A DNA stretch of 64,000 nt, taken from positions 124,001 to 188,000 of the IMG/VR virus record IMGVR_UViG_3300049048_000052. One strand, written 5' to 3'. Each line of letters begins with the position of its first letter. Within the stretch, counting starts at the first letter, position 1. The notes beneath the pieces are model-generated. The model did no database searches. It was not told the DNA's origin and saw only the letters and a list, made by a program, of their open reading frames with translations. Positions 7,861 to 24,077 of the stretch are shown here, piece by piece. The position numbers and the translations under genes were made by a program.

Positions 7861-7924
7861 GAAGGATACCTTCCTTACTGTATAACTGCTATAGTTATCA
7901 TTAGTAAGGAAGGTATTAACTTAT

Positions 7925-8272: not shown

Positions 8273-8308
8273 GCCATACATCGCTGAGTTCAATTCTCAG
8301 CCCCGACA
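8234..8308 (+). tRNA. tRNA-Met(CAU), initiator-like body, irregular acceptor stem
   Basis: D stem GAGC/GCTC; anticodon arm ATGGT-CTCATAA-GCCAT; T arm CTGAG-TTCAATT-CTCAG; only CGGGG/CCCCG of the acceptor pairs. Confidence 0.7.
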
Positions 8309-8310
8309 TT

Positions 8311-8535: not shown

Positions 8536-8540
8536 TCTAC

Positions 8541-9305
8541 TCAGGCGTTTAGTATACTAAACGCCTGCTCTTTTTTACGCATACAGTAGGGACCACCTAA
8601 GTTATATAACCTAAATATAAAAGTCTTAAGGATTTTACCTTGAAAGGAGAAACCGTACTGATTATTCCAGTTGGGATTCTTACTTTGCAAGTCCCTCATA
8701 TGTACATTAAGGGATATATCTAGTAGTTTGTTGAGCCTAGAGGCTAGAGTATACATAAAAGACTTTGAGCATCCATAGGCTGTAAGTCTACGGGAGGACC
8801 AACACCCGTCAGAGTCTAGATATCCTCTAATGAAATCTAACTCGTAGACGCTGTCTATAAGAGGCTCAGGGTAAATCATAGTCTTGGACTTATTACTTTC
8901 TAACTTTAGGATAGTAGTTAGATCTCTATGTAGACTAGTGGAACATATAGCGAGCTGAAGACAGTTAGAAGCTATATTCCTTATTTTATAATCGGTATTG
9001 AGGTTAGATTGTATCTGTTCTAGAATATCCCTGTCCGAGGTAGTAAATACTATCTGACATCCATTTCTATGTAAGTGACCATCCCCATACAATACACCTA
9101 ACATCCAAGCTTTAAAGGTGTCCATAGGGAACAATTTATAGTTCTTAAGCTTAGATAATGGCTTATAGGACATTGCCCCGGAGCTCTGCAGGACTTTGTA
9201 TATACAATAAGAGGATAGCCCTAATTTAGAACTAATATTTGTAACAGACTGACCCTCCTTATACATAGTTATAATAGGCGTTGGGTTAATATGAGTAGAT
9301 TTCAT
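8541..9305 (-). CDS. double-motif LAGLIDADG homing endonuclease with N-terminal HTH
   Basis: AWMLGVLYGDGHL and DFIRGYLDSDGCW motifs. Confidence 0.9.
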   Translation of the reverse strand: MKSTHINPTPIITMYKEGQSVTNISSKLGLSSYCIYKVLQSSGAMSYKPLSKLKNYKLFPMDTFKAWMLGVLYGDGHLHRNGCQIVFTTSDRDILEQIQSNLNTDYKIRNIASNCLQLAICSTSLHRDLTTILKLESNKSKTMIYPEPLIDSVYELDFIRGYLDSDGCWSSRRLTAYGCSKSFMYTLASRLNKLLDISLNVHMRDLQSKNPNWNNQYGFSFQGKILKTFIFRLYNLGGPYCMRKKEQAFSILNA

Positions 9306-9369
9306 AAAATTTGTATTGACTACATGCTTATATTACTAAAGTAATATAGGAAAGAGTGGGTTAATGTTC

Positions 9370-9405
9370 GTACCCTTTGCACGCACCCGCGTAGCAGTAG
9401 GTTAA
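9370..9405 (+). other. displaced 3' half of the tmRNA tag reading frame (VPFARTRVAVG*)
   Basis: GTACCCTT direct repeat with 8500-8507; translates as a cyanobacterial-style tag C-terminus. Confidence 0.75.
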
Positions 9406-9409
9406 TTTA

Positions 9410-9436
9410 GAGAGGGCTCCTTGGGGGGGCCCTTTC
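9410..9436 (+). terminator. GC-rich stem-loop terminator
   Basis: GAGAGGGCTCC-TTGGG-GGGGCCCTTTC. Confidence 0.6.
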
Positions 9437-9451
9437 ACATTAGGAGGGTGT

Positions 9452-9706
9452 ATGGACTCTGATCTCTTAGAGAAGTGGATACTACAATTCTTGGCAGAGC
9501 ACAAAGGGAATCCTAGACTAGTAACCCAAATACTACACGGTGTAAGGATGGATAGTCTAGGTGCGGACTACATTCAAGTAGGTAAGGCTTTACGTACTTT
9601 AAAGGTAAAGGGTCTTATCAAAGTACATAAGATGTATCTAGGTCAGCATTCAAAGAGGTGGCGGCCCTGCTATGAGTTAGAGGAGGTATTCTTAAATGAA
9701 TATTGA
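9452..9706 (+). CDS. hypothetical protein, possible winged-helix
   Basis: GGAGG SD; ILQFL...VGKALRTLKVKGLI pattern. Confidence 0.55.
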   Translation: MDSDLLEKWILQFLAEHKGNPRLVTQILHGVRMDSLGADYIQVGKALRTLKVKGLIKVHKMYLGQHSKRWRPCYELEEVFLNEY

Positions 9707-9911
9707 TACATGTTCCTATGTATTAAATATTGTTGATAGAATATGTCACAGGATACTGTTATACTTATTGGCAACAGCTATAATACATCTATTACTAGAG
9801 CGCTTGGGTATAGGCGCATGGTTAATAGAGGCCGCAGTATTGGCTACCTATAGTATAATAGCTGTGCTTGATATAAACCTTTGTATCCGTATCCAAAAGA
9901 AAGATGAATAA
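9696..9911 (+). CDS. small membrane protein
   Basis: two hydrophobic segments; overlaps neighbours. Confidence 0.5.
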   Translation: MNIDTCSYVLNIVDRICHRILLYLLATAIIHLLLERLGIGAWLIEAAVLATYSIIAVLDINLCIRIQKKDE

Positions 9912-10122
9912 TCTAGATGAGATCGAGCAGGTGTTGGCTTACTTTGGGTTCGTAGAGAAGCTATTCGTAGGAGTACTACTCTCCTTGTTAGCTGTTATCT
10001 TAATTAGATCCTGTACTATACCGTGGTTAGATGTAACCATAGCTATATTAGGAGGGCTGGTTATACCAGTTGCTACCTTATGGTATATAGACAGTTGTAG
10101 TAGTAAATGGAGAGACTGGTAA
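9904..10122 (+). CDS. small membrane protein
   Basis: two hydrophobic segments. Confidence 0.5.
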   Translation: MNNLDEIEQVLAYFGFVEKLFVGVLLSLLAVILIRSCTIPWLDVTIAILGGLVIPVATLWYIDSCSSKWRDW

Positions 10123-10128
10123 ATACCT

Positions 10129-10200
10129 GCCACCTAGGCCAAATGGTGCGGCGGTGAGTTCATACCTCACTTATAGTAAGTTCGATTCTTACAGGTGGTA
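10129..10200 (+). tRNA. tRNA with CAU anticodon (Met or Ile2)
   Basis: Acceptor GCCACCT/AGGTGGT+A; anticodon arm GTGAG-TTCATAC-CTCAC; T arm GTAAG-TTCGATT-CTTAC. Confidence 0.85.
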
Positions 10201-10220
10201 TTGTCGAGTTAAAGGAATAT

Positions 10221-10640
10221 ATGAGTCTTAGTCAGCAAGTAAAAGATTTCTTAAGTGTGGCCCCAGCTAGCTGGATTCCTCCAAGGAAACTTATCACTAC
10301 TAAGTTGAGAGAGCCTATCAAGGGATGTCCTCAACTGAATGTTTACCCCCTGAACCAAGTACTAGAAATTAGCATGGATGGGGCACCCTTCTATCAACCC
10401 AATACTATATGTAGACTAACGGATTCAGATTTCCAGTTCACTATGGTCTACGTTCCAGGAAGGGGTCCCATAGAAGTCTATGTGATTAAAGATCAGAGTA
10501 CTGCCTATGTGTTTGAGGATCAGGTAGAGGCCTTTGCATTCCTCTACACTATTAAGCCCTACGAGCTAACTCAACTGGACGGAGATCCAACCTATGAGTG
10601 GGCACAGTTCAGATCTCACCTAGCCCCAGTACCCGCTTGA
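10221..10640 (+). CDS. hypothetical protein
   Basis: 139-aa ORF with AAGGA SD. Confidence 0.65.
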   Translation: MSLSQQVKDFLSVAPASWIPPRKLITTKLREPIKGCPQLNVYPLNQVLEISMDGAPFYQPNTICRLTDSDFQFTMVYVPGRGPIEVYVIKDQSTAYVFEDQVEAFAFLYTIKPYELTQLDGDPTYEWAQFRSHLAPVPA

Positions 10641-10648
10641 TATAATTA

Positions 10649-10672
10649 TGACTACAGTATATACTGTAGTCA
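10649..10672. repeat. perfect 24-bp palindrome
   Basis: TGACTACAGTAT-ATACTGTAGTCA immediately 5' of tRNA-Thr. Confidence 0.8.
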
Positions 10673-10675
10673 CTG

Positions 10676-10747
10676 GCACCCTACCCCTATATGGTGAGGG
10701 ACCTGCCTTGTAAGCAGGACAACACAGTTCGAGTCTGTGAGGGTGCT
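10676..10747 (+). tRNA. tRNA-Thr(UGU)
   Basis: Acceptor GCACCCT/AGGGTGC+T; anticodon arm CCTGC-CTTGTAA-GCAGG; T arm CACAG-TTCGAGT-CTGTG. Confidence 0.9.
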
Positions 10748-10750
10748 TTT

Positions 10751-10919
10751 ATATGTGCCTATCTTATTCAGTCGGCATATGTAACTATATAAATATCTCC
10801 ATCAAACTGATAGAGTCATAGAGCCTATATGGTCTCTGACTAAGAGCTGATACGGATGGAATATTGGGGGATAGGTACTCCCGATGAGGGCCCCAGCTCT
10901 CAACACAAATATCAGCTCT
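10751..10919 (+). ncRNA. unassigned structured RNA candidate
   Basis: ORF-free; several complementary segments (ATATGTGCC/GGCATATGT, TCCATC/GATGGA, AGTCA/TGACT, AGAGCTGATA/TATCAGCTCT, TGGGG/CCCCA). Confidence 0.45.
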
Positions 10920-10922
10920 CCT

Positions 10923-10991
10923 AGCAACTAACTGGCTTATGCTAACCCTTAATCAGGTAATCATATATTGGTTCAACTCCAATAGTTGCTT
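10923..10991 (+). ncRNA. tRNA-like RNA / pseudo-tRNA
   Basis: Acceptor AGCAACT/AGTTGCT and T arm ATTGG-TTCAACT-CCAAT intact; D and anticodon arms degenerate. Confidence 0.55.
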
Positions 10992-11061
10992 TTCCCAGTC
11001 GCATAACTTGCGTTCCCAACTGGGATTCTTAGCAATGGTTGGCTTAGTCCAATCATTTCTT

Positions 11062-11134
11062 GAGGCTGTCGTCTAAAATGGTAGGACTCCCCAAGTTAGT
11101 GGGGCAGATGTAGGTTCAAATCCTACCGGCTTCA
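11062..11134 (+). tRNA. tRNA-like RNA with 6-nt anticodon loop (undetermined isotype)
   Basis: Acceptor GAGGCTG/CGGCTTC+A (G3:U70); D stem GTCT/GGAC; CCCCA-AGTTAG-TGGGG; T arm GTAGG-TTCAAAT-CCTAC. Confidence 0.7.
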
Positions 11135-11139
11135 TTTAT

Positions 11140-11211
11140 GCAGTGTTGGTCTAATGGATAAGACGTCTCCAAACTAAGGAGTTAATGTAGGTTCGATTCC
11201 TGCTAACTGCG
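11140..11211 (+). tRNA. tRNA-like RNA, loop AAACTAA (nominal ACT, no U33)
   Basis: D stem GTCT/AGAC; CTCC-AAACTAA-GGAG; T arm GTAGG-TTCGATT-CCTGC; 5-bp acceptor GCAGT/ACTGC. Confidence 0.6.
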
Positions 11212-11316
11212 TTTGTGATTTATACAACTTAATATAGTGACCATAATCACCCCACATTACACAAAGCATATCCTCTTAATATTCAGTATTAACTACTGTA
11301 GGTATTAGAGGATATT

Positions 11317-11598
11317 ATGAGTAAGTGGGAATGTCCCCAACAATGCCCCTATCAGGCAGATGATTCTAAGTGGCCCCATATCCGACTCTTCCTCTTAACT
11401 GTGGTTGCGGTCGGCATCCTCTGGGGAACAAAGATATATAAGCAGCAGGACATAGAACCAGCTGATTGGGGTATAGGCTTAACGGCCCTAGTCCTAGCAT
11501 CTAATCACCCTGAGACCCTACACAAGATAACTACTAAGGCAGCTAATAAGTTATTGGACTTAAACCCTGCGGAGGAAGATGAAAGTGAGGGAAGATAA
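11317..11598 (+). CDS. small membrane protein
   Basis: two hydrophobic segments, acidic tail, AGAGG SD. Confidence 0.6.
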   Translation: MSKWECPQQCPYQADDSKWPHIRLFLLTVVAVGILWGTKIYKQQDIEPADWGIGLTALVLASNHPETLHKITTKAANKLLDLNPAEEDESEGR

Positions 11599-12155
11599 TG
11601 ACAAGTACAACGTCCTTAAGCCGCTTCCTAGAGTGGCTTAAGAGTCTGTTCTATAAGAAATCTAAGGGTGAAAAGAGCCATGTCAGGATTATTGAAGAAA
11701 TTAAGAGTCCTATATCCAGGACTATTCGGATTAACAGGGATTACCCAGGGGCAGTTGATACCTGGAAGTCCATACCAATGTATGAGTCAGCCTATGACTT
11801 TTATTGCCTCGTTGATAGAACGAAGCGGGAGGAAATGGGCCGAGATAACCTGTTCTTGCGAGCAGGCAATACCACTATACGAGTTAGAGCTGATCCAAGG
11901 AGTGGACTGGGAGGGGATATTAACTCTTCACATAGAATCACAATCGTTGGAGTCTCAAGACTACCAATAGGTAAAGGTCAGTATCAAACTGAGGTCCTAT
12001 ATGTAGGCCTATTTAATCTAGTTAAGTCCTTCAATTCATATGATAGTGTAGCTAAGGTCTTAGCTCATCGTATAGCTAAAAAGATGAGTGTTGTTATAGT
12101 TGATAATATGGATTGGTGTACATTTATAAATGATGAGAAGAATAGGTTGATATAA
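11598..12155 (+). CDS. hypothetical protein
   Basis: 185 aa, coupled to the previous stop (TAATG). Confidence 0.6.
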   Translation: MTSTTSLSRFLEWLKSLFYKKSKGEKSHVRIIEEIKSPISRTIRINRDYPGAVDTWKSIPMYESAYDFYCLVDRTKREEMGRDNLFLRAGNTTIRVRADPRSGLGGDINSSHRITIVGVSRLPIGKGQYQTEVLYVGLFNLVKSFNSYDSVAKVLAHRIAKKMSVVIVDNMDWCTFINDEKNRLI

Positions 12156-12221
12156 TGATTCTCTATTAGTTACTTTAGGACCTCAGGGTGATTACCTTGG
12201 GGTCTTATCTTTAGGAGGGAT

Positions 12222-12365
12222 ATGTCTAGGAGTGATCCTTTACCTGTTACTTGTCAGACCTGTAAGGGCCATGGTAAGTTGTTTGATAGGAGACCAGGTC
12301 GTGGGGATGGCAAGAAGTGCTATGAGTGTGATGGCAGTGGTTTCTCAGTGCAGTCTAATGATTAA
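12222..12365 (+). CDS. 47-aa DnaJ-type zinc-finger miniprotein (not in ORF track)
   Basis: AGGAGG SD; CQTCKGHG...CYECDGSG. Confidence 0.65.
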   Translation: MSRSDPLPVTCQTCKGHGKLFDRRPGRGDGKKCYECDGSGFSVQSND

Positions 12366-12382
12366 AGGGTGTGATGTAAGTT

Positions 12383-12592
12383 ATGTCTAGAGGTGGTGGT
12401 TGGGCAGTCTGTCATGTATGTAATGGTACTGGCGTATTGCTAGATAGAGAGGACGAGGTCATCGACTGTAAGACCTGTAACAATAGCGGTTTAGAAGAAG
12501 TAGATAATGACTTTACTAAGGTTAAAGACCTATGGAAGTTATTAGTAGGTCAAACACTAGTAGAGAGGATGAGTGCTAATGTCGGGGCCTAA
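12383..12592 (+). CDS. DnaJ-type zinc-finger miniprotein
   Basis: CHVCNGTG...CKTCNNSG. Confidence 0.65.
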   Translation: MSRGGGWAVCHVCNGTGVLLDREDEVIDCKTCNNSGLEEVDNDFTKVKDLWKLLVGQTLVERMSANVGA

Positions 12593-12838
12593 GGAGGAAA
12601 AGGATGATGCGGTTGTGTTGAGTATGGGGGATGTCACCTTTGTTCTCTTTAAGAATGCTAATGGAGAGGTAGTTGCCCTTCCAGTAGATGAGGATGATGA
12701 AGATGACATGCCCTTTGGGATTCAGATGCCCCAATGAACCTTGTAACGAATGGACCGACTGTGACTATAAGGATAGATTAATATATCTACCTGAGAAGCA
12801 TGAGGACCCTAATGATTGGCAGGATGCCAGTTAAGCCT

Positions 12839-12918
12839 CCCCGCTACGTCCTAAGGTAGGACACCTGCCTTCTAAGCAGGCGCCTTGAGCATAACAGGTT
12901 CGATTCCTGTAGCGGGGG
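12839..12918 (+). tRNA. tRNA with UCU (Arg) anticodon and 13-nt variable arm
   Basis: Acceptor CCCCGCT/AGCGGGG+G; D stem GTCC/GGAC; CCTGC-CTTCTAA-GCAGG; variable CGCCTTGAGCATA; T arm ACAGG-TTCGATT-CCTGT. Confidence 0.85.
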
Positions 12919-13943
12919 TTAATACATTTGGAGAAGAGTATGTCGGAAGTCTGGTTGGCTATAGGTATTACTATGTGGTTATGTGTAGGTATAGGAGCTA
13001 TGTTCCTTAACCTCTTTAAGATTAGTATAAAAGAGTTTATGGGAGTGAAGACTGATGCGGTCCATCTTACGTTAATGTCTTTATCTATCATTGCTCTGGG
13101 CCCAATAGGTCTAGCCATTGTTATTTGGGGGTAATATGAAGGATCCAAAACAGAATCCTGGTCAGGCCGCTGCTGCGGTCGCTATTGTTGTAGGCTTGAT
13201 TGCAGGGGGCGCAGTTATAAGGGACGAGATCGTTAGGAACGTCAATACTCAGGAGCAAAAGCATGACCGATAAGAAAGAAGAGAAGGATACTGGTAAAGG
13301 TTCAAGTAATAAACCGATAACTAAGGAAAGCGATAAACCAAACGGCGGATCACAATATATCGGCGGTATACCTGGCCTGGGGGATAAATGAAGTTAGTGT
13401 CTATTTGTCTAGGGTTCCTAGCAGTAGTTACGGGACTGTGTTTTATATCTATTCAATCCAACCTACCCTGCGATTCGTGGGTGATGGGGATGGCTATGAC
13501 TTACCTATTATCATTGGGAGGTATATCCTTCCTCTTATACACTGTTTGATTAATGAAGGGGCCTCAATTAAGGGGCCCATAAAAGGAGAAAGATGATTGG
13601 AACAATGTGGAGAAATAGAGTCAGTGGTATACCCCATTGGGTGGTAGGTCATATGATTATAAATCCTATAAGATTAGATACCCACACTAATACTCACGGT
13701 ACGTGGATCATATTAGAACATAGGGCAAGTGGACCTAAGGAACTATATGTTTCTGAGCATGAGCTATCTGAGCTCTATAATATGGAAGGCAATATATGAT
13801 AATGGAATTCTGGATGCAGCCTGTTATACAGGAGTTTGCTACTGTAATATTGCTTTCTATCGTGGCCCCTATATTGATATCATTGCTATTCTATTGGTTG
13901 TATAAGGATTAATTGATTGGTTACTTAGTAAGGAATCAATATA

Positions 13944-14674: not shown

Positions 14675-15109
14675 ATGACTATTGAAATACAAGTACACAA
14701 TAGAGAGACTATTGTTAAGGCAGTAACAGAGTTGCCCAAGGGCAACCGTACGATGGTTATCAGTATAACCAATGAGCAAGACTGGCCTCGACTACCTCCT
14801 GTGAAGCTAGAGGAGTACGTTATGCTCAGCTTCTATGATAATGATGGGCCTGATAGTTGTACACCATGTATGACCAGGGGACAGGCTAAGAGAGTAGTAT
14901 CTACCTTTATGGCATGTAAGGATAAGCTAACCCATCTGCTAATCAATTGTGATGCTGGAATATCCCGAAGCGCAGGTATGGCAGAAGCTTTCTCGCTACT
15001 TGTGTATGGTAAGGACTATTACTATACATGTGATAGAATCCCCGCCCCTAATGCTTGGGTGAAGAGGCTGACATTGGAGGCCGGGGGTCTTGCTCATGGC
15101 TACCAGTGA
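14675..15109 (+). CDS. protein-tyrosine/dual-specificity phosphatase-like protein
   Basis: CX5R loop NCDAGISRSAG; ISIT, LSFYD and PN motifs. Confidence 0.8.
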   Translation: MTIEIQVHNRETIVKAVTELPKGNRTMVISITNEQDWPRLPPVKLEEYVMLSFYDNDGPDSCTPCMTRGQAKRVVSTFMACKDKLTHLLINCDAGISRSAGMAEAFSLLVYGKDYYYTCDRIPAPNAWVKRLTLEAGGLAHGYQ

Positions 15110-15683: not shown

Positions 15684-15718
15684 TATTGACTTTATTGATT
15701 GGTCCGCTTTTATTGATT
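15684..15718 (+). promoter_or_regulatory. tandem TATTGAYT motifs (recurrent upstream element)
   Basis: copies at 15684, 15693 and 15711; same motif upstream of many + strand genes. Confidence 0.55.
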
Positions 15719-15756
15719 GTGAAAACAAACACAAACAAAAAGGATCAATTTCTATC

Positions 15757-16206
15757 ATGGCTAACGTAATCACTGCACAAACCCCCATCCGTATCACCAT
15801 TGCTACCCCCGGTCGTAATGGTAATATCAGTGGGGATATTGTATCTCGTGTAGTAATGGCAAGCGTACTGGGCTTCCCCAAAGAGGGTTTGGAAGCCCCA
15901 GTATTCCCTCAACAAGAGGTAGCATCTATCAATGGTAATGAGAAGCTGACGGCCGCTGATAAGCAGTCCCGTGTTAACGCTATCATTCTTGAGTACACTG
16001 AAGCCCAGAATGCATTCCTGCATTCTGGTGGCGTCAATGCATTGGATATGGTGCCCTCTGCTGTTGTGGATTATCTGGTAGCACATGAAGGCTTCTCTGC
16101 TAATGGTAGAGATGAAAAGCCTTATGTTCGTGCTACGGACTTGGTTGCTAACTTCGTTGAAGATGGCACCGCTGTCCAAGTTTATCCTAGCGCAACCTGG
16201 GGTTAA
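15757..16206 (+). CDS. putative ubiquitin-like (MoaD/ThiS-type beta-grasp) protein with insertion
   Basis: C-terminus VEDGTAVQVYPSATWG* matches the register of MoaD-type L.DGD.V.F.PPV.GG*; first gene of the operon containing the E1. Confidence 0.6.
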   Translation: MANVITAQTPIRITIATPGRNGNISGDIVSRVVMASVLGFPKEGLEAPVFPQQEVASINGNEKLTAADKQSRVNAIILEYTEAQNAFLHSGGVNALDMVPSAVVDYLVAHEGFSANGRDEKPYVRATDLVANFVEDGTAVQVYPSATWG

Positions 16207-16258
16207 TACCTAGGCATATTGATTTTATTGATTGTCCCTATTAGTTTGAATTAGGACA

Positions 16259-17746
16259 ATGGAAGTGGATAGAGTTAGTTACAGACAATACAGTCCTGCA
16301 CTGAGAAGATTAAACCTCAGGGATGGTAAATACTATCTGGACTATGGGTATGATGATATAGAAGTAAAGCTGCAGCCCTTATCTGAGTTAGGTAAGAAGC
16401 TACTGGGTGATAATACTTCTAGAGTTATAGATCGTAGATTACTCAATAAGTATGACTTTGATGATGGGCACTGGAGGATCAACGGTAGATTCTGTAAGAC
16501 TCCTGTGGTACCAGTCTATCTAGACTCGTTACTGAATAACTCTCACCCTCTAATGACCTTGGGTGATGATGTGGCAGGTATTGTAGAGCTAGGGGAGAAG
16601 CTCTTAGCTGACTTTCAGCCCCCTCAGATCAATAATGAGGGCTACACTAAGATACTTACTCAGGGTACACATGATAGATCAGGTCACTTCTACCCTCGTC
16701 TGACTCAGGTTACAATCAATGGCAAGGGGGGAATAGATGATAAGACTGAGGAACTCTACCGTCTTATCAGTAGTTACTTGGAGATCCTTGATGTCTCTGG
16801 AGTGGCAGTTAGGGATAGTGCTATCTACACATCCGTAGTCCATCAGAAACTTAAGGAGGCTAAGGTCACCATAAGAAACGCTAGGGATGAGCATGCTGGA
16901 GGTGGTCGCCCTGATATCCTGTTTGCGGATACGCTAAGTGTTCCCAAGCTTACGGAGGAAGAGGCAGCAAAGCTAATCATGAACGCACGTAGAGAGAATA
17001 GGTTGAGAGGTTACATAACTGATAAACCTACACTCTCTGAGTTGGAAGATAACACTGAGATGCTAGCTAAGTTCCAGGAAGCTACTAAGTCTATTAAGGG
17101 CTTAGTTATTAGCTATCTCCGTAAGCGTGATCCCATTGTATTCACCGCAGGTAGTAACTTCGGGGTTTCACCTGAGGCTTGGAATATGGATCTTGAGGAG
17201 AAGGATAGAATGGGACCCCTAACCGCTATCATAGATCATGAGGGTAATATAGGTTGGGGTAGCCCTCATAAAGAGGGTAACCGTATGATCTCCAACAATG
17301 GTCCTATTGTTCACTATATGGGCCCTAGCTGGTGTGTTAGATTCCATTATGTGAATGATGAGGGTGTTACCATCGATGTGCTTCAGGATAATGAGATATT
17401 CTGCGTCACAGGTCAGATGTATGCAGATGCTATTAGACCTTACCGGCCAGACCTGCTAGAGTTATGGCAACCAGATCCTGAGGCTATCTACTTTGTATGT
17501 AGCTACTGGTGCCAAAGAAGTGGGGCCTTTGCTAAGCATAACGGTATCCTGGACTTCTATAATGTCTTCCGTATGCGTTGGACATTGGCAGAATGGATTA
17601 CATATTCTCTAGTGCCTAAGTGTGTAAACATGGGTATTAACATACCTGGTTACAATGAGAAAGCCATGGTTGATGGACAGACTCAGTCCGCCAGACTTGC
17701 AGCTATCAAGGATTATCTAACTAAGGCTAATGCCCTTAAAAGTTAA
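16259..17746 (+). CDS. hypothetical protein in Ubl/E1 operon (E2-like C-terminus possible)
   Basis: 495 aa; Cys/Trp-rich C-terminal region; position between Ubl and E1. Confidence 0.7.
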   Translation: MEVDRVSYRQYSPALRRLNLRDGKYYLDYGYDDIEVKLQPLSELGKKLLGDNTSRVIDRRLLNKYDFDDGHWRINGRFCKTPVVPVYLDSLLNNSHPLMTLGDDVAGIVELGEKLLADFQPPQINNEGYTKILTQGTHDRSGHFYPRLTQVTINGKGGIDDKTEELYRLISSYLEILDVSGVAVRDSAIYTSVVHQKLKEAKVTIRNARDEHAGGGRPDILFADTLSVPKLTEEEAAKLIMNARRENRLRGYITDKPTLSELEDNTEMLAKFQEATKSIKGLVISYLRKRDPIVFTAGSNFGVSPEAWNMDLEEKDRMGPLTAIIDHEGNIGWGSPHKEGNRMISNNGPIVHYMGPSWCVRFHYVNDEGVTIDVLQDNEIFCVTGQMYADAIRPYRPDLLELWQPDPEAIYFVCSYWCQRSGAFAKHNGILDFYNVFRMRWTLAEWITYSLVPKCVNMGINIPGYNEKAMVDGQTQSARLAAIKDYLTKANALKS

Positions 17747-17758
17747 CTAGGAAATAGA

Positions 17759-18463
17759 ATGAATCTAATATTAGTTGGGGCTGGGCAATTGGGCTCAGCC
17801 TTTATCTTGGAATTGCTTAAACGGATATCGGCTACAGGTTTCACTGCTATCACTATACATATCTATGATGATGATATCGTAGAGGATAGGAATACCCATG
17901 TACAGTATTTCACCCCCAGGGATCGAGAGAAGCCCAAGGCTGTGGTTATGGCTGACCTGGCTGCAGAGTATGGTATAAAGGCCATCGCCCATGTTGAGCG
18001 CTTTGCCTTCCCAGATCTACAAGCTATGGAGAACGTGGTAGTGGTTGATGCTGTAGACAATGTCAGCACCAGGTATGCTCTGTGGAACTATGCGGTAACA
18101 CAGAATGTACCCCTGATGACTATGGGTAATAGCCTGAAGGGTAATGGCTTTGTCACATGGACCTGTGCTGCCTTTGATCACAACACCTGGGGCCTAGGTG
18201 CAGGTAGCTACACTGCAATCATGAATGCAATCGAGAAAGAAAAGGAACCTGAAGAGAAGGTACCCCCTTGTGAACTAACTAAGTATAGAGGTCTAGCCCT
18301 TAATACTGCGTTGGCCGCATGTGAGGCATTCCTTATCTATTGGGGTCAGGATGTCATGATTAGAATAGACCCTGAGGTATATCAAGCTGGCTTCGTCACT
18401 GAGTGGCGTATCAAGCCCGAGGGTTATGAGTTGGTTCACATTAGTTATATGGAAGGTAAGTAG
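17759..18463 (+). CDS. ThiF/E1-like adenylating enzyme
   Basis: VGAGQLGS, YDDDIVEDRN..Q, KPKA, DAVDN..TR, MGN; PPC (Cys171) candidate thioester Cys; no CxxC Zn motifs. Confidence 0.9.
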   Translation: MNLILVGAGQLGSAFILELLKRISATGFTAITIHIYDDDIVEDRNTHVQYFTPRDREKPKAVVMADLAAEYGIKAIAHVERFAFPDLQAMENVVVVDAVDNVSTRYALWNYAVTQNVPLMTMGNSLKGNGFVTWTCAAFDHNTWGLGAGSYTAIMNAIEKEKEPEEKVPPCELTKYRGLALNTALAACEAFLIYWGQDVMIRIDPEVYQAGFVTEWRIKPEGYELVHISYMEGK

Positions 18464-19798
18464 ATGGTTTATTATCAAGCAGCAGCAAGTCTAACTCCTA
18501 AACTCTATGTAGAGGTTGTAGGTGGTATCAATTGGCATATCACATCAGCCACTCAGTACCTTATCAATATTGTTAAGGAGCATATGGATTGCTTCGAGGG
18601 TATTGCTGATGGGGTAAAGTATGTTAAGGCCTTGATCCCGCCAGAAAGAGCGGCCTACACATCATCAACACCACAGGTCCTTACTTGTGGTCTAGTGGCA
18701 ACCTCAGCCTACATGAAACACAATCTGGGGATGGAAACAGATAACCATGATGAGTACTGGTACAAGACTCATCCTCTATGTGTTGCATCTGGTTTACCTC
18801 AGCAACATACGCTGAGTGTTATCCATCATCTGGTCAACCCTTATGGCCTGGGTATCTCTAAGGTATTCCATCGACGTGGAGTATCTATGAGCCCTGATGC
18901 TATTAAGTGGATGACTTATCTACCTCCTAATCCTATGGGCTATGGTAATCGTACTACTAGCAATAAGGAATATGCGGAGCTATGTGGCTTTGATCCTAAA
19001 GTTGTAGAGTCGGAGTACTCTACGGAGTTCGTGGATAAGCCTAAGGGTCCTGTTATCCTGTTCAATGCAGTGGCAGCTACTACATCCTTTGCTAGTGGAG
19101 GGGGCCACGCTAGTTATGCAGGTCCTAGAGCTAAATTCCATAGTTGGGAGATGGCCATCCGACTTGATAGACTGGAGAGGATCAACTATGCAGTTGAACC
19201 TGAGATCGTTGAGGTTGAGCCTAAGCTAAATCAAGTCCTAGATGTATGGAAGTGCTTGACCAAGGATGGTGCAACTCTTGAGAGCAAGAAGCCTCAGGGT
19301 ACTACCTTTGTTGTGCCTCCTATGCAGAAGAGTCTATTGCCTCTATTACCCTCTAATAATAGTCTTATTATCAGTAAGGGAGAGTTTGAGGACTTCAAGA
19401 GATATAATCCTAACCGGATTACGGATGATGACTATAAGGAAGTATTGAAGCATCCTGTAAATAAGGAGAGGGTAGAAAGCTTCCTTAGTATGTTGATGAA
19501 TGAAGTCGATAAACTAGGTGAGACATCTGACATTCTGGTGGCGGCGGGTGGTGTTAAACTAAAGGATCTATCTCAGAAGATAGGCGCTGTCCAATGTATC
19601 ACAGACTTGAAGAATAAGTTATGTGCTATAGCCAAGGGTGTTACTGAGCTTACCTTATCAGATATCATCTATTTCAACCGGCAGTTGGTCGAGGATAAGA
19701 CCTATGATATTATCTGGGCACTTGGTGACGAGATGCTAGATAACATGTTGGATGAATGGATTCTGAACCTGTATGGTGTTAACGACTATACTAAATGA
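18464..19798 (+). CDS. hypothetical protein in Ubl/E1 operon
   Basis: 444 aa, start abuts the E1 stop codon. Confidence 0.7.
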   Translation: MVYYQAAASLTPKLYVEVVGGINWHITSATQYLINIVKEHMDCFEGIADGVKYVKALIPPERAAYTSSTPQVLTCGLVATSAYMKHNLGMETDNHDEYWYKTHPLCVASGLPQQHTLSVIHHLVNPYGLGISKVFHRRGVSMSPDAIKWMTYLPPNPMGYGNRTTSNKEYAELCGFDPKVVESEYSTEFVDKPKGPVILFNAVAATTSFASGGGHASYAGPRAKFHSWEMAIRLDRLERINYAVEPEIVEVEPKLNQVLDVWKCLTKDGATLESKKPQGTTFVVPPMQKSLLPLLPSNNSLIISKGEFEDFKRYNPNRITDDDYKEVLKHPVNKERVESFLSMLMNEVDKLGETSDILVAAGGVKLKDLSQKIGAVQCITDLKNKLCAIAKGVTELTLSDIIYFNRQLVEDKTYDIIWALGDEMLDNMLDEWILNLYGVNDYTK

Positions 19799-19856
19799 GT
19801 ACTTTTAGTACTCTAACTATTGATTGAATTGATTTACTCTTTATTATTGGTCCAGT

Positions 19857-21968
19857 ATGGATAGAAGATATTTTGAACTGATTAAACCTAAGTACTTGAC
19901 TTGGGAGTTTCTATCTAAGTATGTGGAGGTCAAGCCTCCTTTTGGGGCTATAGGACCCATCGTATATCTAAGGACATACTCTAGGTTTGTCCCTCAAATG
20001 AGCAGGAGGGAGTTGTGGTGGGAGACCTGTATGAGGGTAACTGAATATAGTATGTCCCTATTCCCAGCTAAGCCTAGGTACCCTATGTCCTTCGAGGAGT
20101 TACAGGCAGAGGCAGAGGAACTCTTTGATAACCTATTCTGGATGAAGGTCTTTGCTGCAGGGCGTACTATGTTCACTGGAGGGGCCCAACTGAAGACTGG
20201 GGACTCTCAATTCAATTGTAGCTTTATTGCTGTTAGTGAGTTGAAGGCATTCAAGGATGCCCTGTATCTCCTGATGAATGGTTGTGGTGTTGGTTTCTCA
20301 GTTGAGAGGCAGTACACGGAGAATCTACCCAGGTTCAGACAGGACTTTAAGGTTAGACATCTGGATTATAATCCGATAGCTAGGGGAAAAAGAGAGGACA
20401 TCACTCGTCTTGAAGAGGATGATAACAACCACATAATCAAGATAGGAGATAGTAAGGAAGGCTGGTGCGATGCACTGTTTGGTTTCCTGTCTAACTTAGC
20501 AGATCTGAGCTGTTGGAAGAACTTTGTATTTATATACAACGATGTCAGACCTGAGGGTGAGAAGCTTAAGACCTTTGGTGGTAGAGCCAGTGGGCCTGCA
20601 CCCCTAAGACTAATGTTCGAGCGTATTGAACAGACCATCAAGGAAGCGCCTAAGGGTCATCTGAGACCTGTAGACGTAATGGATATCATGAATATCATTG
20701 CGGCCGCAGTAGTTGTAGGTGGTGTCCGTAGGTCCTCTGAGATTGCCTTTGGTAACCTAGATGATGTGGACTTCGTAGAGGCTAAGCTGAACCTATGGTC
20801 TGATCCAGATAAGCAAAGGTACCAGGCTACTAGAGTTCTCTCCAATAACTCTGTGGCTATATGGGAGAAACCTAGTAAGGCCCAGCTAGTAGATATATTT
20901 GAACGTATTAAGAATAATGGTGAGCCTGGCATCTCTATTGCAGGTAATGCCGCTAAGAGAAGACCTAACTATAAGGGCTCTAATCCATGTCATGAGATCC
21001 TATTGGATCATAATGGAGTATGTAATTTAACTACTATAAATATGGCTGCCTTTGTGGAGGCTGATCGTATCTTTAACTGGAAGGCCTTTGAGAGAGCGCT
21101 TTATCATGCAGTCCGTATGGGTTCCCGTATTACCAATGTTAATATGTGGGATCCTGATTGGGATTATGTTCAGAAGAGAGACCGCCTACTAGGTGTATCC
21201 CTAACTGGTCAAATGGACTGCTGGAATAAGATGGGGGTAGACTTTGATAGTACTACTGCCATCAATATACTCTCTAGTGCTAAGGCTTATGCTAGGGCAT
21301 ACGCAGATGAATACCATAATATCATGGGTATTCCTACATCCCTTCTGATTACTACTGTTAAACCAGAGGGCACGATCTCTCAGTTACCTACAGTAAGCAG
21401 TGGGGTCCATGCTAGTTATGCTCCTTATTACATTAGGAGAGTAAGGATTAGTAGTAATGATCCTGTGGCTAAAGCACTAAGGGACATGGGTCTAGAACCT
21501 CAGCCTGAGAATGGACAAGGTAAAGACCTGGATGCTCCTGACTGTTCCACCTGGGTATTCAGCTTCCCCATTAAGACTGATGCTAAGATCAGGGCCATTG
21601 ATGAGCCTGCGATCCGTCAGCTTAAGAGGTACAAGGTTATGATGGATGAGTATGTTGATCATACTTGTTCTATTACCGTTACTGTGGCCCCGGATGAATG
21701 GGATGAGGTAGTAGATTGGGTCTACGACAATTGGGAGTCCTGTGTAGGTATTGCATTCTTACCTAGGTTTGATCCTAGTGAGCCGGGTAACATGTACCCT
21801 CAGATGCCATATGAGACATGTACTGAAGAACAGTACCATGAGATGGTTAAGGCCATGGGTACCATCGATGAGGATGAGCTTGTAGCTTTGATCTCAGTCT
21901 TTGAGCAGGAGTACGAGGAGCATGAGCTTGATGCAGGCTGTGCTACTGGTATGTGTCCCGTTAGATAA
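19857..21968 (+). CDS. nrdJ: class II (B12-dependent) ribonucleoside-triphosphate reductase
   Basis: YLRTYSR, FNCSF, GCGVGF, NPCHEI, CNL, TTVKPEGTISQL, C-terminal CATGMCPVR. Confidence 0.95.
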   Translation: MDRRYFELIKPKYLTWEFLSKYVEVKPPFGAIGPIVYLRTYSRFVPQMSRRELWWETCMRVTEYSMSLFPAKPRYPMSFEELQAEAEELFDNLFWMKVFAAGRTMFTGGAQLKTGDSQFNCSFIAVSELKAFKDALYLLMNGCGVGFSVERQYTENLPRFRQDFKVRHLDYNPIARGKREDITRLEEDDNNHIIKIGDSKEGWCDALFGFLSNLADLSCWKNFVFIYNDVRPEGEKLKTFGGRASGPAPLRLMFERIEQTIKEAPKGHLRPVDVMDIMNIIAAAVVVGGVRRSSEIAFGNLDDVDFVEAKLNLWSDPDKQRYQATRVLSNNSVAIWEKPSKAQLVDIFERIKNNGEPGISIAGNAAKRRPNYKGSNPCHEILLDHNGVCNLTTINMAAFVEADRIFNWKAFERALYHAVRMGSRITNVNMWDPDWDYVQKRDRLLGVSLTGQMDCWNKMGVDFDSTTAINILSSAKAYARAYADEYHNIMGIPTSLLITTVKPEGTISQLPTVSSGVHASYAPYYIRRVRISSNDPVAKALRDMGLEPQPENGQGKDLDAPDCSTWVFSFPIKTDAKIRAIDEPAIRQLKRYKVMMDEYVDHTCSITVTVAPDEWDEVVDWVYDNWESCVGIAFLPRFDPSEPGNMYPQMPYETCTEEQYHEMVKAMGTIDEDELVALISVFEQEYEEHELDAGCATGMCPVR

Positions 21969-22151: not shown

Positions 22152-22916
22152 CTAAGCTGAAATAAAGTGAGCCCACATACCTATTGAGTCAACGCAGGTT
22201 TCTGTCATCATGTTATATGAGTACAGGACCTGCTTGCCCTTGGCTGGGTTGGAACTGTCATTCCTATCGTAGCCCCATTGGTACCACTCACCATAAGGAT
22301 CATTTACAATGAAGCCCTTGCTATTGTAACCGACCAGCGTAACTATGTGACCAGAGGAAGTAAAGTAGCCATGGACAACAACAGGGAAGCCCTTACGTAA
22401 CCATGCCTTTACCTCATCAAAGTTAGCATTATCAACGAAGGTATCCTTAAATCCGAAACCCTTAACAGCCTCAGCCAAGTGTTGAGGAGAGTGTCTAGAT
22501 AAACCATTAGACTCTACCCACATCTGAATTTCATCCTCTAACTGATCAGGGCCCGAGGCACTTAGACCTAGGTATGCCATGGCCATAGCTATAGAGGTAA
22601 CATTACAGGAGCCATATGGATACATCTTATTATCCAATTGGCTGAAGTAAGGTACATCTAGTAGTACCTCACCATTAGGTGCCTCCTTGATCTCATGGTC
22701 TACAGAGCAATGACCCATGAATACATACCAGGTATTCATATTGTTAATAAGGTTAGCAGGGTTAAGTACTACTCTATAATGACCTTTCTCAGTAGCAAGT
22801 GAATCAACAATGAAGGACTTACCTTTAACTACTGCAGCCTTCTGATCCTTAGGTAGTTCACTAGCCTGAGCATTGGATCTTTTGAACGTAGTATCAACGT
22901 TTACTATTAATTTCAT
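22152..22916 (-). CDS. C39-like cysteine peptidase with cyanobacterial-type N-terminal domain (possible endolysin)
   Basis: LDVPYFSQLDN, SCNVTSIAMA, GHIV, VNDPYG catalytic motifs. Confidence 0.85.
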   Translation of the reverse strand: MKLIVNVDTTFKRSNAQASELPKDQKAAVVKGKSFIVDSLATEKGHYRVVLNPANLINNMNTWYVFMGHCSVDHEIKEAPNGEVLLDVPYFSQLDNKMYPYGSCNVTSIAMAMAYLGLSASGPDQLEDEIQMWVESNGLSRHSPQHLAEAVKGFGFKDTFVDNANFDEVKAWLRKGFPVVVHGYFTSSGHIVTLVGYNSKGFIVNDPYGEWYQWGYDRNDSSNPAKGKQVLYSYNMMTETCVDSIGMWAHFISA

Positions 22917-22958: not shown

Positions 22959-24077
22959 ATGGACAGTGAAATAGTAAGCAAGAGGACAATATTGTTAGGC
23001 CTTGGGGGTAGTCATTCCTATGGTCTAAATGTAGAAGGTTCTGATATAGATGGTAAGGGTATATGTGTAGGGCTAAAGGAGCATTACCTAGGCTTCACTA
23101 CATTTGAACAGAAGGACGCAGGTTGGGATATAAGTAAGACGTTATGGAAGGATCATCCTATTAAGATAGGTGAGGACCTAGTTGTATATGAACTACGTAA
23201 GTACCTGCAGTTGGCTGCGGATGCTAATCCTAATATACTAGAACTCCTATGGTTGAAACCAGAGCAGTATCTATTACAGACAGAGGTAGGTGCTGAGCTG
23301 ATAAAGCATAGGCAACTGTTTATGACTAGTAAGTGTAAATGGACCTTTAGTGGTTATGCCCATAGCCAATTAAAGAAGATACAGGCTCACCGTAAGTGGT
23401 TATTGGATCCACCGGATAGGAGACCTGAGCCACAGGACTTTGGTCTTGGTCTGGGTAATAAAGATCCTATGACCAAGGAACAACTACATGCCTTCTATGA
23501 GTTTCTATATATCCTGGTTAGAGATGCTATCGAATATGCTCAACCAGCTGAGGACTTATATAACATATTAATTGCTCGTATAGATTACAAGGGTCTATTC
23601 AAACAACATCCACTATCTATAGGGGTACTGCCCTATGTACAATCCTTAACTAGATCCTCTGATGACTTTATAAGTCTACTGCATGCTAGTCAGGAGTATA
23701 GAGGAGCTCTGACCCGTTGGGATGCTTATCAGAATTGGAAGCTTAATCGTAACAAGAAGAGGGCAGCTACTGAGGCCGCTATTGGTTATGACAGCAAACA
23801 TGGTATGCATCTAGTAAGACTGTTGTCTATGGGTATTGAGATCCTAGAGACAGGGGAGCTTATAGTGGATAGAGGCATAGCTGGGGATAGAGATGATCTT
23901 ATGGCCATACGTAACTGCGAGTGGCCCTATGAGAAGCTAATGGACTATGTTAGTCTCTTAGAGCAAAGAGTAGAGGATGCGTTTAAGCAAACTAGACTTC
24001 CTAGATCCTGTGACCGAACTAAGGTCAATGAGTTGTGTATTGAGTTAGTTGAGATAATGGGTTGGTATGACTATTAG
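22959..24077 (+). CDS. Pol-beta superfamily nucleotidyltransferase (YcgL/RlaP-like)
   Basis: GSHSYGL...SDIDGKGI, NPNILELL, FSGYA..Q, GYDSKHGMHLVRLL. Confidence 0.85.
   Translation: MDSEIVSKRTILLGLGGSHSYGLNVEGSDIDGKGICVGLKEHYLGFTTFEQKDAGWDISKTLWKDHPIKIGEDLVVYELRKYLQLAADANPNILELLWLKPEQYLLQTEVGAELIKHRQLFMTSKCKWTFSGYAHSQLKKIQAHRKWLLDPPDRRPEPQDFGLGLGNKDPMTKEQLHAFYEFLYILVRDAIEYAQPAEDLYNILIARIDYKGLFKQHPLSIGVLPYVQSLTRSSDDFISLLHASQEYRGALTRWDAYQNWKLNRNKKRAATEAAIGYDSKHGMHLVRLLSMGIEILETGELIVDRGIAGDRDDLMAIRNCEWPYEKLMDYVSLLEQRVEDAFKQTRLPRSCDRTKVNELCIELVEIMGWYDY

Follow-up and report, generated by a model that had tools for sequence, protein, structure and literature searches.

Gene content of the locus

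The 64,000-nucleotide stretch of IMG/VR virus record IMGVR_UViG_3300049048_000052 analysed here (positions 124,001 to 188,000 of that record, hereafter the window) carries four co-directional genes, g1 to g4, separated by gaps of 52, 12 and 0 nt (Table 1). The open reading frames are exactly those described in the initial annotation, whose observation of a tightly linked four-gene cassette we confirm. The genes are not chance reading frames, as all four have homologues in the same order in many independent viral contigs at 20-40% protein identity.

Table 1. Positions of the cassette genes and neighbouring features within the window
Feature	Position	Strand	Description
Promoter-like boxes before g1	15692-15719 (15692-15701 and 15710-15719)	+	Two exact copies of the TTATTGATTG box
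g1	15757-16206	+	149 aa, ends ATWG (Trp148-Gly149); candidate activated modifier
Hairpin	16196-16214	+	Weak; overlaps the g1 stop codon
Boxes before g2	16217-16234		TATTGATT boxes, including the repeat at 16225-16234
g2	16259-17746	+	495 aa; candidate Cys-dependent transfer (E2-like) component
g2 conserved C-terminal domain	17006-17743		~aa 250-495
g2 Cys418 codon	17510-17512		Motif WCxR
g3	17759-18463	+	234 aa; ThiF/E1-like adenylation enzyme
g3 Cys171 codon	18269-18271		Only candidate nucleophile
g4	18464-19798	+	444 aa; candidate thiol peptidase or transferase
g4 conserved N-terminal domain	18641-19243		~aa 60-260
g4 Cys75 codon	18686-18688		Invariant
Promoter-like box after g4	19817-19826	+	CTATTGATTG; marks the downstream boundary of the cassette
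Class II ribonucleotide reductase (RNR) gene	19857-21968		Follows the CTATTGATTG box

The initial annotation noted TATTGATT repeats before the first two genes. These repeats are present, but they are a general, promoter-like motif of this phage and are not specific to the cassette. The same TTATTGATTG box occurs 21 times in the window against 5.3 expected, and lies upstream of many other genes, including those at 13944, 14306, 19857, 26732, 50379 and 53059. On the basis of a consensus match alone, the hairpin at the end of g1, together with the boxes that follow it, may separate g1 expression from that of g2-g4.

g3 is a real but very divergent ThiF/E1 adenylation enzyme, which matches Pfam ThiF at 51.9 bits against a cut-off of 28.1 and aligns to TcdA, UBA6 and ThiF structures across the ATP-binding core. 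Although its best family-level matches are ThiF/MoeB-type adenylyltransferases, it falls below every equivalog cut-off. The protein is minimal, starting at the GxGxxG loop (G7, G9, G12), with D37, D39, R44-N45, K60 and D100, and it has neither a separate Cys domain nor a UFD domain. It has V in place of the Arg of the N-x-x-R-Q motif and lacks the N-terminal helix that supplies an Arg finger in MoeB/ThiF. Its cysteines are at positions 136, 171 and 188, so it has no zinc CxxC pair, as the initial annotation stated, and C171 sits in VPPCEL. The initial annotation placed this cysteine where E1-type enzymes carry the thioester Cys, which is not supported. Compared with MoeB and UBA5, the PPC cysteine aligns with the first zinc-ligand or PxCT position at the base of the crossover loop, and not with the classical catalytic-Cys position. 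In this family the loop after it is almost deleted (PPCEL-xxxR-GL), so C171 is the only candidate nucleophile, a role inferred from sequence alone.

The AF2 model of g1 is confident (pLDDT 85, pTM 0.65) and places strands at residues 10-16 and 28-34, helices at 52-60, 66-89 and 95-110, strands at 129-134 and 139-144, and a free tail at 145-149. The free C-terminal Gly noted in the initial annotation is present, but a beta-grasp fold was not demonstrated. Foldseek searches of the PDB gave a best E-value of 0.7, ubiquitin variants reached a probability of at most 0.04, the only resemblance was to the four-strand protein L B1 domain, and nothing was found in BFVD. For g2, the N-terminal ~250 residues are variable and poorly predicted, and the model is confident only for residues ~250-470, which gave no UBC/E2 match at any E-value up to 10. 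Neither g2 nor g4 has detectable homology to known families, and g4 shows no Pfam, PDB or profile similarity to peptidases, JAB domains, E2s or RINGs.

The initial annotation also found no thiamine or Moco partners. Consistently, none of the 35 larger ORFs of the window that we scanned has a thiamine, Moco, rhodanese or desulfurase domain, and the precomputed Pfam tables of the related loci show none either.

Conservation of the cassette in viral sequence

The order g1-g2-ThiF-g4 recurs in about 25 loci, numbered here L005-L010, L022-L030 and L048-L057, most of which are jumbo-phage contigs of 194-395 kb. Only these four genes are shared between loci. Homologues of g1, g2 and g4 occur in no locus that holds only a generic ThiF (L011-L021, L031-L047 and L058-L081), and g4 homologues always lie directly downstream of the ThiF gene. 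Failure of the four genes to co-occur in other genomes had been named beforehand as grounds for rejecting the proposal, and the genes co-occur strictly, although no g1 gene was found directly upstream in L022 or L057 and g1 is not adjacent to g2 in L053/L054. No full-length family member was found in 185,579 cellular species genomes or among cultured phages, so that the module was seen here only in viral sequence. We found no prior description of it.

The g3 family comprises 255 cluster representatives, nearly all 230-260 aa long. Across the 60 members aligned, G7, G9, G12, D37, D39, R44, N45, K60, D100, R105, P170, C171 and L173 are invariant, with the family cysteine lying in LPPCEL. The 16 homologous g1 ORFs end in WG, WGR, WGK, WGL, WGF, FG, FGK or YLG. 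The terminal Gly is invariant in the 13 that were aligned and is preceded by W, F or Y, except in L007, where Leu precedes it. About half of the homologues carry one extra residue (K, R, L or F) after the Gly, which is the signature of an activated and processed C-terminus.

The g2 homologues keep an invariant Cys418 in WCxR and an invariant Trp446, and extra g2-like paralogues sit beside a single E1 in L006 and L007. The g4 homologues keep an invariant Cys75 and a near-invariant Asp96, and the conserved N-terminal domain of g4 has the motif GGGH215ASYxGPR. A His lies about 140 residues downstream of the Cys in most members, although this His is not at the same position in the L009/L010/L030 subgroup. 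Where many g4 homologues carry an 8-Cys zinc module, the copy in the window has a helical C-terminus.

A candidate virus-encoded conjugation system

Our analysis partly supports the interpretation in the initial annotation of a phage-encoded ubiquitin-like conjugation system. The E1-superfamily assignment, the conserved terminal Gly of g1, the co-occurrence of the four genes and the lack of sulfur-pathway partners hold. The description of g2 and g4 as E2, E3 or peptidase-type components, however, remains an inference from invariant Cys residues, and the lytic lifestyle and counter-defence role remain suppositions. With moderate confidence, we favor a phage-encoded, E1-driven conjugation system that works like ubiquitination and whose partners have no detectable relatives, in effect what looks like a protein-tagging machine made of new parts. 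In this model, g1 is made, in many relatives with one extra residue after the Gly, which would be removed by a thiol peptidase (candidate: the g4 N-terminal domain, Cys75/His215). The minimal homodimer-type E1 would then bind ATP and adenylate Gly149 of g1, after which the acyl group would pass to Cys171, the only invariant E1 cysteine, and then to Cys418 of g2, acting like an E2, and/or to the invariant cysteine of g4. Ultimately, g1 would be placed on an amino group of a host or phage target, with target choice supplied by the variable N-terminal region of g2 and by the zinc module that many g4 homologues carry. The g2-like paralogues beside a single E1 fit several transfer or specificity subunits served by one E1.

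What the data establish is the gene set, its conservation and apparent restriction to viral sequence, an intact E1 nucleotide-binding core, the aromatic-Gly end with its optional one-residue tail, and one invariant Cys in each of g2, g3 and g4, whereas every chemical step, the roles given to g2 and g4, and the target are inferred. Against this model stand the absence of a recognizable Ubl fold in g1 and of an E2 or peptidase match for its partners, the missing N-terminal helix and the V in the N-x-x-R-Q motif of g3, the shifted g4 His in the L009/L010/L030 subgroup, the lack of a g1 gene found directly upstream in L022 or L057, and the bulky penultimate residue of g1, which is unlike the Gly-Gly of ubiquitin, ThiS and MoaD.

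Two alternatives are possible but unlikely. In the first, the cassette is a sulfur-carrier system, in which g3 adenylates g1 as MoeB/ThiF/TtuC do, the acyl-adenylate is converted to a g1 thiocarboxylate with the g2 and g4 cysteines acting as a persulfide relay, and sulfur is donated for a thio-modification, for example of the phage's own tRNAs, of DNA or of a cofactor. This reading is consistent with the best family-level matches of g3, its single-domain architecture without a separate catalytic-Cys domain, and a phage tRNA array that includes tRNA-Lys(UUU), a class that is 2-thiolated in cells. In addition, C-terminal extensions removed by a peptidase also occur in some sulfur carriers such as QbsE and CysO (PMC1779556). 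However, no rhodanese, cysteine desulfurase, PP-loop thiolase, ThiG or MoaE appears in the cassette, in the scanned ORFs of the window or in any related locus. The terminus is aromatic-Gly and not the Gly-Gly of known carriers, g1 is about twice the size of ThiS or MoaD with a three-helix insert, all NCBIfam sulfur-carrier E1 models score far below their cut-offs, and no zinc site is present.

In the second alternative, g3 adenylates g1, or a piece cut from it, as the E1-like enzymes MccB, PaaA and the RiPP-type ThiF enzymes do, and the activated carboxylate is captured by a small molecule, a lipid or an intramolecular nucleophile rather than by a protein lysine, with g2 and g4 acting as tailoring or processing enzymes. 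E1-like enzymes that modify peptide C-termini without E2s are established (PMC12250964; 10.1101/2024.05.13.593989), neither g2 nor g4 shows an E2, JAB or RING fold or motif in our searches, and Atg8, the closest analogue for the C-terminal motif, is attached to a lipid. Against this, g1 is predicted to be a well-folded 150-aa domain conserved over its whole length and not a leader-core peptide, the three invariant cysteines, one per enzyme, are what a thioester relay needs, and no transporter, immunity gene or other biosynthetic gene is conserved next to the cassette.

Interference with host systems is still less likely. In this view, the phage E1 and its partners would capture or cap host Ubl-type C-termini (Bil Ubl, or the cGAS-like enzymes used by CBASS Cap2), or g1 would act as a decoy substrate, making the module a counter-defence device. 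The cassette lies among early, auxiliary-type genes, namely RNR, an RlaP nucleotidyltransferase and rIIA in the window, and NAMPT and a Macro domain in L048 and L055. Host Bil and CBASS systems depend on E1-type chemistry (PMC11601596; PMC10097602), and the family was found only in large phages and viral contigs. However, g1 co-evolves with the E1 in the same cassette and keeps its own conserved terminus, which points to a cognate pair, there is no similarity to BilA-D or Cap2/Cap3 beyond the generic Rossmann core, and nothing in the data speaks to targets. That the four genes are merely neighbours is very unlikely and close to refuted by synteny kept across about 25 loci with otherwise unrelated flanks, despite the separate promoter-like boxes of g1 and g2 and the displaced or undetected g1 in the four loci named above.

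Relation to known E1-containing systems

The bacterial E1-containing conjugation operons Bil (BilABCD), Bub, CBASS Cap2/Cap3 and the PRTRC cassette likewise encode a ThiF/E1-like adenylation enzyme next to a small protein with a conserved C-terminal Gly and further cysteine enzymes. Weak sequence matches exist to BilD (26.7 bits), to Cap2-type E1-E2 models and to PRTRC_ThiF (40 bits against a cut-off of 144.75), but every curated cut-off is missed. PRTRC ThiF is about the same size as g3, and its model also begins close to the GxGxxG loop. The present cassette is encoded by phages and not by hosts or conjugative elements, its E1 is a single 234-aa domain with no inactive adenylation domain, Cys domain or E2/JAB fusion (PMC11601596), no E2, JAB or DUF6527 homologue was detected, and the g1 model is not recognizably a beta-grasp.

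The MoeB-MoaD, ThiF-ThiS and TtuC-TtuB sulfur-carrier pairs share a minimal, probably dimeric E1-like enzyme beside a small protein whose C-terminal Gly would be adenylated. The cassette differs in having no zinc CxxC pairs, N-terminal helix or Gly-Gly terminus and no rhodanese, desulfurase, ThiG, MoaE or TtuA partner, and its scores are 5-10 fold below the equivalog cut-offs.

By functional analogy alone, the eukaryotic Atg7 - Atg8/Atg12 - Atg3/Atg10 - Atg4 system has modifiers ending in aromatic-Gly, often with a short tail that a Cys protease (Atg4) must remove (yeast Atg8 FG|R, GABARAP YG|L, human ATG12 WG), a non-canonical E1 (Atg7) without a separate Cys domain, and non-canonical E2s. 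No sequence or fold homology was detected for g1, g2 or g4, and g3 has no Atg7 N-terminal domain. MccB, PaaA and the RiPP-type ThiF-like adenylyltransferases (PMC12250964) also act on the C-terminus of a ribosomally made substrate without a recognizable E2, but those substrates are short peptides with other terminal residues and the enzymes carry an N-terminal peptide-clamp (RRE) domain, whereas g1 is a predicted folded 150-aa protein and g3 has no extra domain. In the lambdoid/T1 phage tail-assembly system (PMC1779556), a phage-encoded protein with a ubiquitin-like role and a conserved C-terminal Gly (TAPI) sits next to a JAB/NlpC peptidase (TAPK). TAPI systems have no E1 and lie in tail-morphogenesis clusters, while this cassette has no JAB or NlpC domain, has an E1 and lies among replication and auxiliary genes.

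Genomic setting and conservation of the four-gene cassette

The ORF listing confirms four co-directional genes, g1 to g4, separated by gaps of 52, 12 and 0 nt and followed by a class II (B12-dependent) ribonucleotide reductase (RNR) gene. The window belongs to IMGVR_UViG_3300049048_000052, a 251,780-bp viral contig that carries typical large-phage genes, including rIIA, PolA with an intein, a clamp and clamp loader, RecA, PhoH, an RNA ligase, tail-fibre-like proteins and an array of tRNA genes. The TATTGATT repeats described in the initial annotation are real, and we considered whether they act as an operon-specific operator. However, the box TTATTGATTG occurs 21 times in the window against 5.3 expected, almost always 25-45 nt upstream of a gene, including the RNR gene. 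The repeats are therefore window-wide, and the box is a general promoter-like element that is probably a promoter or regulator site of this phage. This also implies that g1, g2-g4 and the RNR gene may each have their own start of transcription. Scans for sigma-70 promoters and terminators were no better than shuffled controls. The features of the window and of the related loci are listed in the table below.

Features of the window and of related loci (L-numbers denote loci recovered in this study; strand is given where reported)
Sequence	Feature	Position	Strand	Description
Window	tRNA array	329-12919		10 tRNA genes: Leu x2, Pro, Lys-UUU, Met x2, Thr, Ser, Arg-UCU and one odd call
Window	tmRNA call	8310-8626		Permuted tmRNA called by ARAGORN; may be spurious or interrupted
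Window	LAGLIDADG-type ORF	8541-9305	minus	Overlaps the tmRNA call
Window	Box TTATTGATTG	e.g. 13910, 14267, 15692, 15710, 16225, 19817, 26705, 50349, 53018		Examples among 21 sites
Window	144-aa ORF	14675-15109		Two genes upstream of g1; CX5R signature (NCDAGISRS)
Window	g1	15757-16206		149 aa, ending ...ATWG
Window	Hairpin	16196-16214		Short, GC-containing; overlaps the g1 stop codon; might lower read-through into g2-g4
Window	g2	16259-17746		495 aa
Window	g3	17759-18463		234 aa
Window	g4	18464-19798		444 aa
Window	Class II RNR gene	19857-21968		Follows the cassette
Window	Peptidase_C39_2 / endolysin-like gene and RlaP-type nucleotidyltransferase gene	22152-22916 (minus) and 22959-24077		Just downstream of the RNR gene
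Window	Family A DNA polymerase gene	45586-48870		Interrupted by an intein with a LAGLIDADG endonuclease domain
L006	Extra g2-like paralogues	3335-4267 and 4263-4907		g2 C-terminal domain, each with the conserved Cys, beside a single E1 gene
L007	Extra g2-like paralogues	5114-5965 and 5965-6801		g2 C-terminal domain, each with the conserved Cys, beside a single E1 gene
L007	g4 homologue	3759-4733		Ends in an eight-cysteine module
L024	g4 homologue	708-1967		Ends in an eight-cysteine module
L026	g4 homologue	3116-4180		Ends in an eight-cysteine module
L027	g4 homologue	1402-2865		Ends in an eight-cysteine module
L028	g4 homologue	1257-2774		Ends in an eight-cysteine module
L009, L010, L030	g4 homologues			End in an eight-cysteine module
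L048	NAMPT (NAD salvage) and Macro-domain genes	1097-2554 and 3461-3961		Cassette lies just downstream
L055	NAMPT (NAD salvage) and Macro-domain genes	630-2201 and 3612-4112		Cassette lies just downstream

Searches with blastn and tblastn against 50,697 cultured-phage records found no match for the region or for g2, g3 or g4, a word-indexed protein search found only g3 itself and nothing for g2, single-protein locus scans returned only the source contig, and a first metagenome scan found nothing. The family was opened by a full HMMER search with g3 (see below), after which scans seeded with family alignments fetched relatives from three sources. These were IMG/VR (L005-L010, L053 and L054, on contigs of 235, 194, 33, 240, 395, 332, 93 and 40 kb), metagenomes (L022-L030) and the protein-to-contig index (L048-L057, including 243-251 kb scaffolds). 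A g4-seeded viral scan added no new locus. Across these loci, tblastn, jackhmmer and profile searches showed that a g4 homologue lies directly downstream of the ThiF gene in every locus with enough downstream sequence, and that a g2 homologue lies upstream in every locus with enough upstream sequence. A g1 homologue lies upstream of that in 16 of 18 such loci, and was not found in L022 or L057. Identities are only 20-40%.

None of the three partner families occurs in the 52 loci that hold only generic ThiF/MoeB relatives. An all-against-all clustering shows that these four are the only genes shared between the loci, whereas the flanks differ. The 144-aa ORF two genes upstream of g1, which has a weak DSPc phosphatase match (21.6 bits, below the cut-off of 33.5), is not conserved next to the cassette in other loci. 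RlaP homologues also lie near the cassette in L008 and L009. A pattern scan of one genome from each of 185,579 bacterial and archaeal species returned only partial matches to the generic Rossmann half. The module is therefore real, self-contained and under selection and, as far as these searches reach, it is confined to viruses, mostly very large ones.

The E1-like protein g3 and its candidate modifier g1

g3 matches Pfam ThiF (PF00899) at 51.9 bits against a gathering cut-off of 28.1, covering residues 3-176, and aligns with the ATP-binding core of TcdA, UBA6 and ThiF structures. It is thus a member of the E1-like/ThiF superfamily, but it reaches no curated equivalog cut-off (adenyl_thiF 40.5 against 275, MoeB 24.7 against 266, TcdA 25.6 against 304 and PRTRC_ThiF 40 against 144.75), and hits to BilD and Cap2-type models are weak. 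A full HMMER search of 1.84 billion cluster representatives found only 255 proteins at E <= 0.001, and 108 at E <= 1e-10. Nearly all are 230-260 aa long and match end to end, indicating a discrete family of short E1-like proteins. One 2073-aa protein matched g3 residues 23-79 in 13 separate stretches, and may be a repeat protein or an assembly artefact.

In 60 aligned family members, G7, G9, G12, D37, D39, R44, N45, K60, D100, R105, G130, W134, P170, C171 and L173 are invariant. The GxGxxG glycines, the acidic residues after strand 2, the Lys and the Mg-binding Asp (G7, G9, G12, D37, D39, K60 and D100) align to TcdA and, although the Arg of the N-x-x-R-Q motif is V48, R44-N45 is invariant. The nucleotide-binding core is therefore intact. 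Cysteines occur in g3 only at 136, 171 and 188, with no CxxC, and the structural zinc site of MoeB/ThiF enzymes, made of two CxxC pairs, is absent. The single conserved cysteine in the family is C171, in the motif LPPCEL, the same residue that the initial annotation had singled out. In MoeB and UBA5, this Cys aligns with the first zinc ligand (the 'PxCT' position) at the base of the crossover loop. In this family only about four residues separate it from the next helix, so that the classical crossover loop is essentially missing and C171 is the only candidate nucleophile.

All 16 homologous g1 ORFs found (130-184 aa) end in WG, FG or YLG (Leu-Gly in L007), and about half of them have one further residue, giving WGR, WGK, WGL, WGF or FGK. 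The L048 homologue, for example, has the WGR form. The Gly is one of only four invariant columns in the 13-sequence alignment. AlphaFold2 (AF2) on that alignment gave a confident model (pLDDT 85, pTM 0.65) with predicted strands 10-16 and 28-34, helices 52-60, 66-89 and 95-110, strands 129-134 and 139-144, and then a five-residue free tail (145-149) outside secondary structure. Foldseek found nothing significant in the PDB or BFVD. The top PDB hits are protein L B1 domains, with E 0.7-2.5 and TM by target 0.34-0.46, which have a four-strand, one-helix fold that SCOP places in the beta-grasp class, while ubiquitin variants appear only at negligible probability (at most 0.04). A beta-grasp fold is compatible with the predicted topology but is not demonstrated. 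The conserved, processed-looking C-terminal Gly next to an E1 is strong evidence that this end is the activated group. An aromatic-Gly end with a short removable tail is the pattern of Atg8/GABARAP and Atg12, not of ubiquitin, ThiS or MoaD.

The partner proteins g2 and g4

Searches with g1, g2 and g4, both as single sequences and as family profiles, gave nothing in Pfam, NCBIfam, PHROGs, PADLOC or PDB sequences. Homologues of g2 are 266-794 aa long and diverge quickly in the N-terminal half, but share a C-terminal domain in which Cys418 (in the motif WCxR) and Trp446 are invariant and Arg420 is nearly so. A rhodanese-type CX5R reading of the WCxR motif was rejected because the spacing is not conserved. 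The AF2 model of g2 has an overall pLDDT of 54, though in residues ~250-470 most of the chain scores 70-93, and there the predicted order is helices, a run of strands, Cys418 just after a strand, then three helices. Foldseek against the PDB gave no hit below E 0.37 and no E2 among the best 50, so that a UBC fold was not found, although this negative result is weakened by the shallow alignment. L006 and L007, two of the IMG/VR loci, each carry two further g2-like paralogues. An E2 role for g2 is therefore inference from the invariant Cys, the position next to the E1 and the paralogue expansion, and is not a finding.

The conserved part of g4 is the N-terminal ~200 residues, in which Cys75 is invariant and Asp96, Gly110 and Tyr127 are conserved, along with the motifs GLPQ, PYGLGIS and GxGHAxYxGPR. 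A Cys followed about 140 residues later by a His is the order and spacing of papain-like (clan CA) thiol peptidases, in which the His lies about 130-200 residues downstream of the Cys nucleophile in a papain fold. However, His215 is present in most members but is displaced in one subgroup (L009, L010 and L030), and a profile comparison with the window's own C39_2 peptidase, considered as a possible relative, was negative (hhalign probability 0.1%). A PP-loop reading of the g4 SGGGH motif was also rejected, as it is in the wrong position and lacks the Asp. Many g4 homologues end in an eight-cysteine, double-zinc-ribbon-like module (CxxC ... CxxCW ... C..C ... CxxC) that could be a binding or E3-like part, whereas the window's g4 has a helical C-terminus instead.

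Interpretation and relation to known E1-dependent systems

The observation of this set of four genes is confirmed, and is considerably stronger than could be known when it was first annotated, because the cassette is conserved and was found only in viral sequence. The initial interpretation as a ubiquitin-like conjugation system is supported in part: the E1 and a C-terminal Gly as its activated group are well supported, but the ubiquitin-like fold of g1 and the E2, E3 or peptidase roles of its partners are not shown. The data fit best with an E1-driven relay, which we hold with moderate confidence. In this view, the tail of g1 would be trimmed where there is one, g3 would adenylate Gly149, the acyl group would pass through the invariant cysteines of g3, g2 and/or g4, and g1 would be ligated to a target. 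Our analysis establishes the cassette, its conservation, the intact nucleotide-binding core of g3, the conserved end of g1 and the invariant cysteines, whereas binding of the g1 tail in the E1 ATP site, the formation of adenylate, thioester and conjugates, and the roles of g2 and g4 are inferred.

In this reading the cassette works like the Bil, Bub, Cap2 and PRTRC-type bacterial systems and like eukaryotic Ubl pathways, but it meets the defining features of none of them. The E1 is a bare single domain and no E2, JAB, DUF6527 or RING homologue is present. Relative to the Bil architecture (PMC11601596), g3 has a single domain of 234 aa, the BilD model matches only its Rossmann core (26.7 bits), and there are no BilA, BilB or BilC hits. 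Bub systems have a DUF6527 serine protease, a JAB-E1 or E2-E1 fusion and Ser-based intermediates, whereas no DUF6527, JAB or E2 Pfam hit appears in g1-g4 or in the g2 and g4 homologues scanned, and the conserved nucleophile candidates here are Cys. For the PRTRC cassette, which comprises PRTRC proteins A-F and ParB in addition to the ThiF equivalog, there are no hits for g1, g2 or g4. The only phage-encoded Ubl-like system that we are aware of is the lambda TAPI/TAPK tail-assembly pair, which has no E1 (PMC1779556).

E1-driven conjugation in prokaryotes has so far been described as a host weapon against phages (Bil, Bub, CBASS Cap2) or as a feature of conjugative elements. We know of no E1-type system described as encoded by phages themselves, and full-text literature searches for a phage-encoded E1/Ubl system found no description. 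E1-based C-terminal activation is already known, and what differs here is a distinct short E1 family of 255 sequence clusters, in viral contigs wherever genomic context could be seen, that travels with three partner families with no detectable relatives. It is tempting to speculate that jumbo phages carry their own complete E1-driven conjugation cascade, in which the modifier, transfer enzyme and peptidase/ligase are new folds or derivatives too diverged to recognise. This would be an independent, virus-specific reinvention of ubiquitin-like tagging around a minimal E1, used during infection to tag host or phage proteins, though we regard this reading as tentative and somewhat less likely than not. 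If the cassette conjugates, protein tagging would be used on both sides of the phage-host conflict, new enzyme folds would be added to Ubl chemistry, and a compact four-gene system that can be reconstituted in E. coli would be at hand. If it does not, it is still a new E1-dependent chemistry that is widespread in very large phages.

Other explanations are less likely. A thiocarboxylate sulfur carrier is weakened by the non-Gly-Gly end of g1 and by the complete absence of sulfur-transfer partners, as no ThiG, MoaE, rhodanese or desulfurase was found among the 35 ORFs scanned in the window or in relatives. An MccB-like or lipid-directed C-terminal chemistry is equally unlikely. A counter-defence decoy or interceptor, which differs from the main model mostly in its target, is slightly less likely still. 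Chance adjacency of the four genes is very improbable. In L048 and L055, two ~250-kb phage scaffolds from the protein-to-contig index, the position of the cassette just downstream of NAMPT and Macro-domain genes suggests host takeover or counter-defence.
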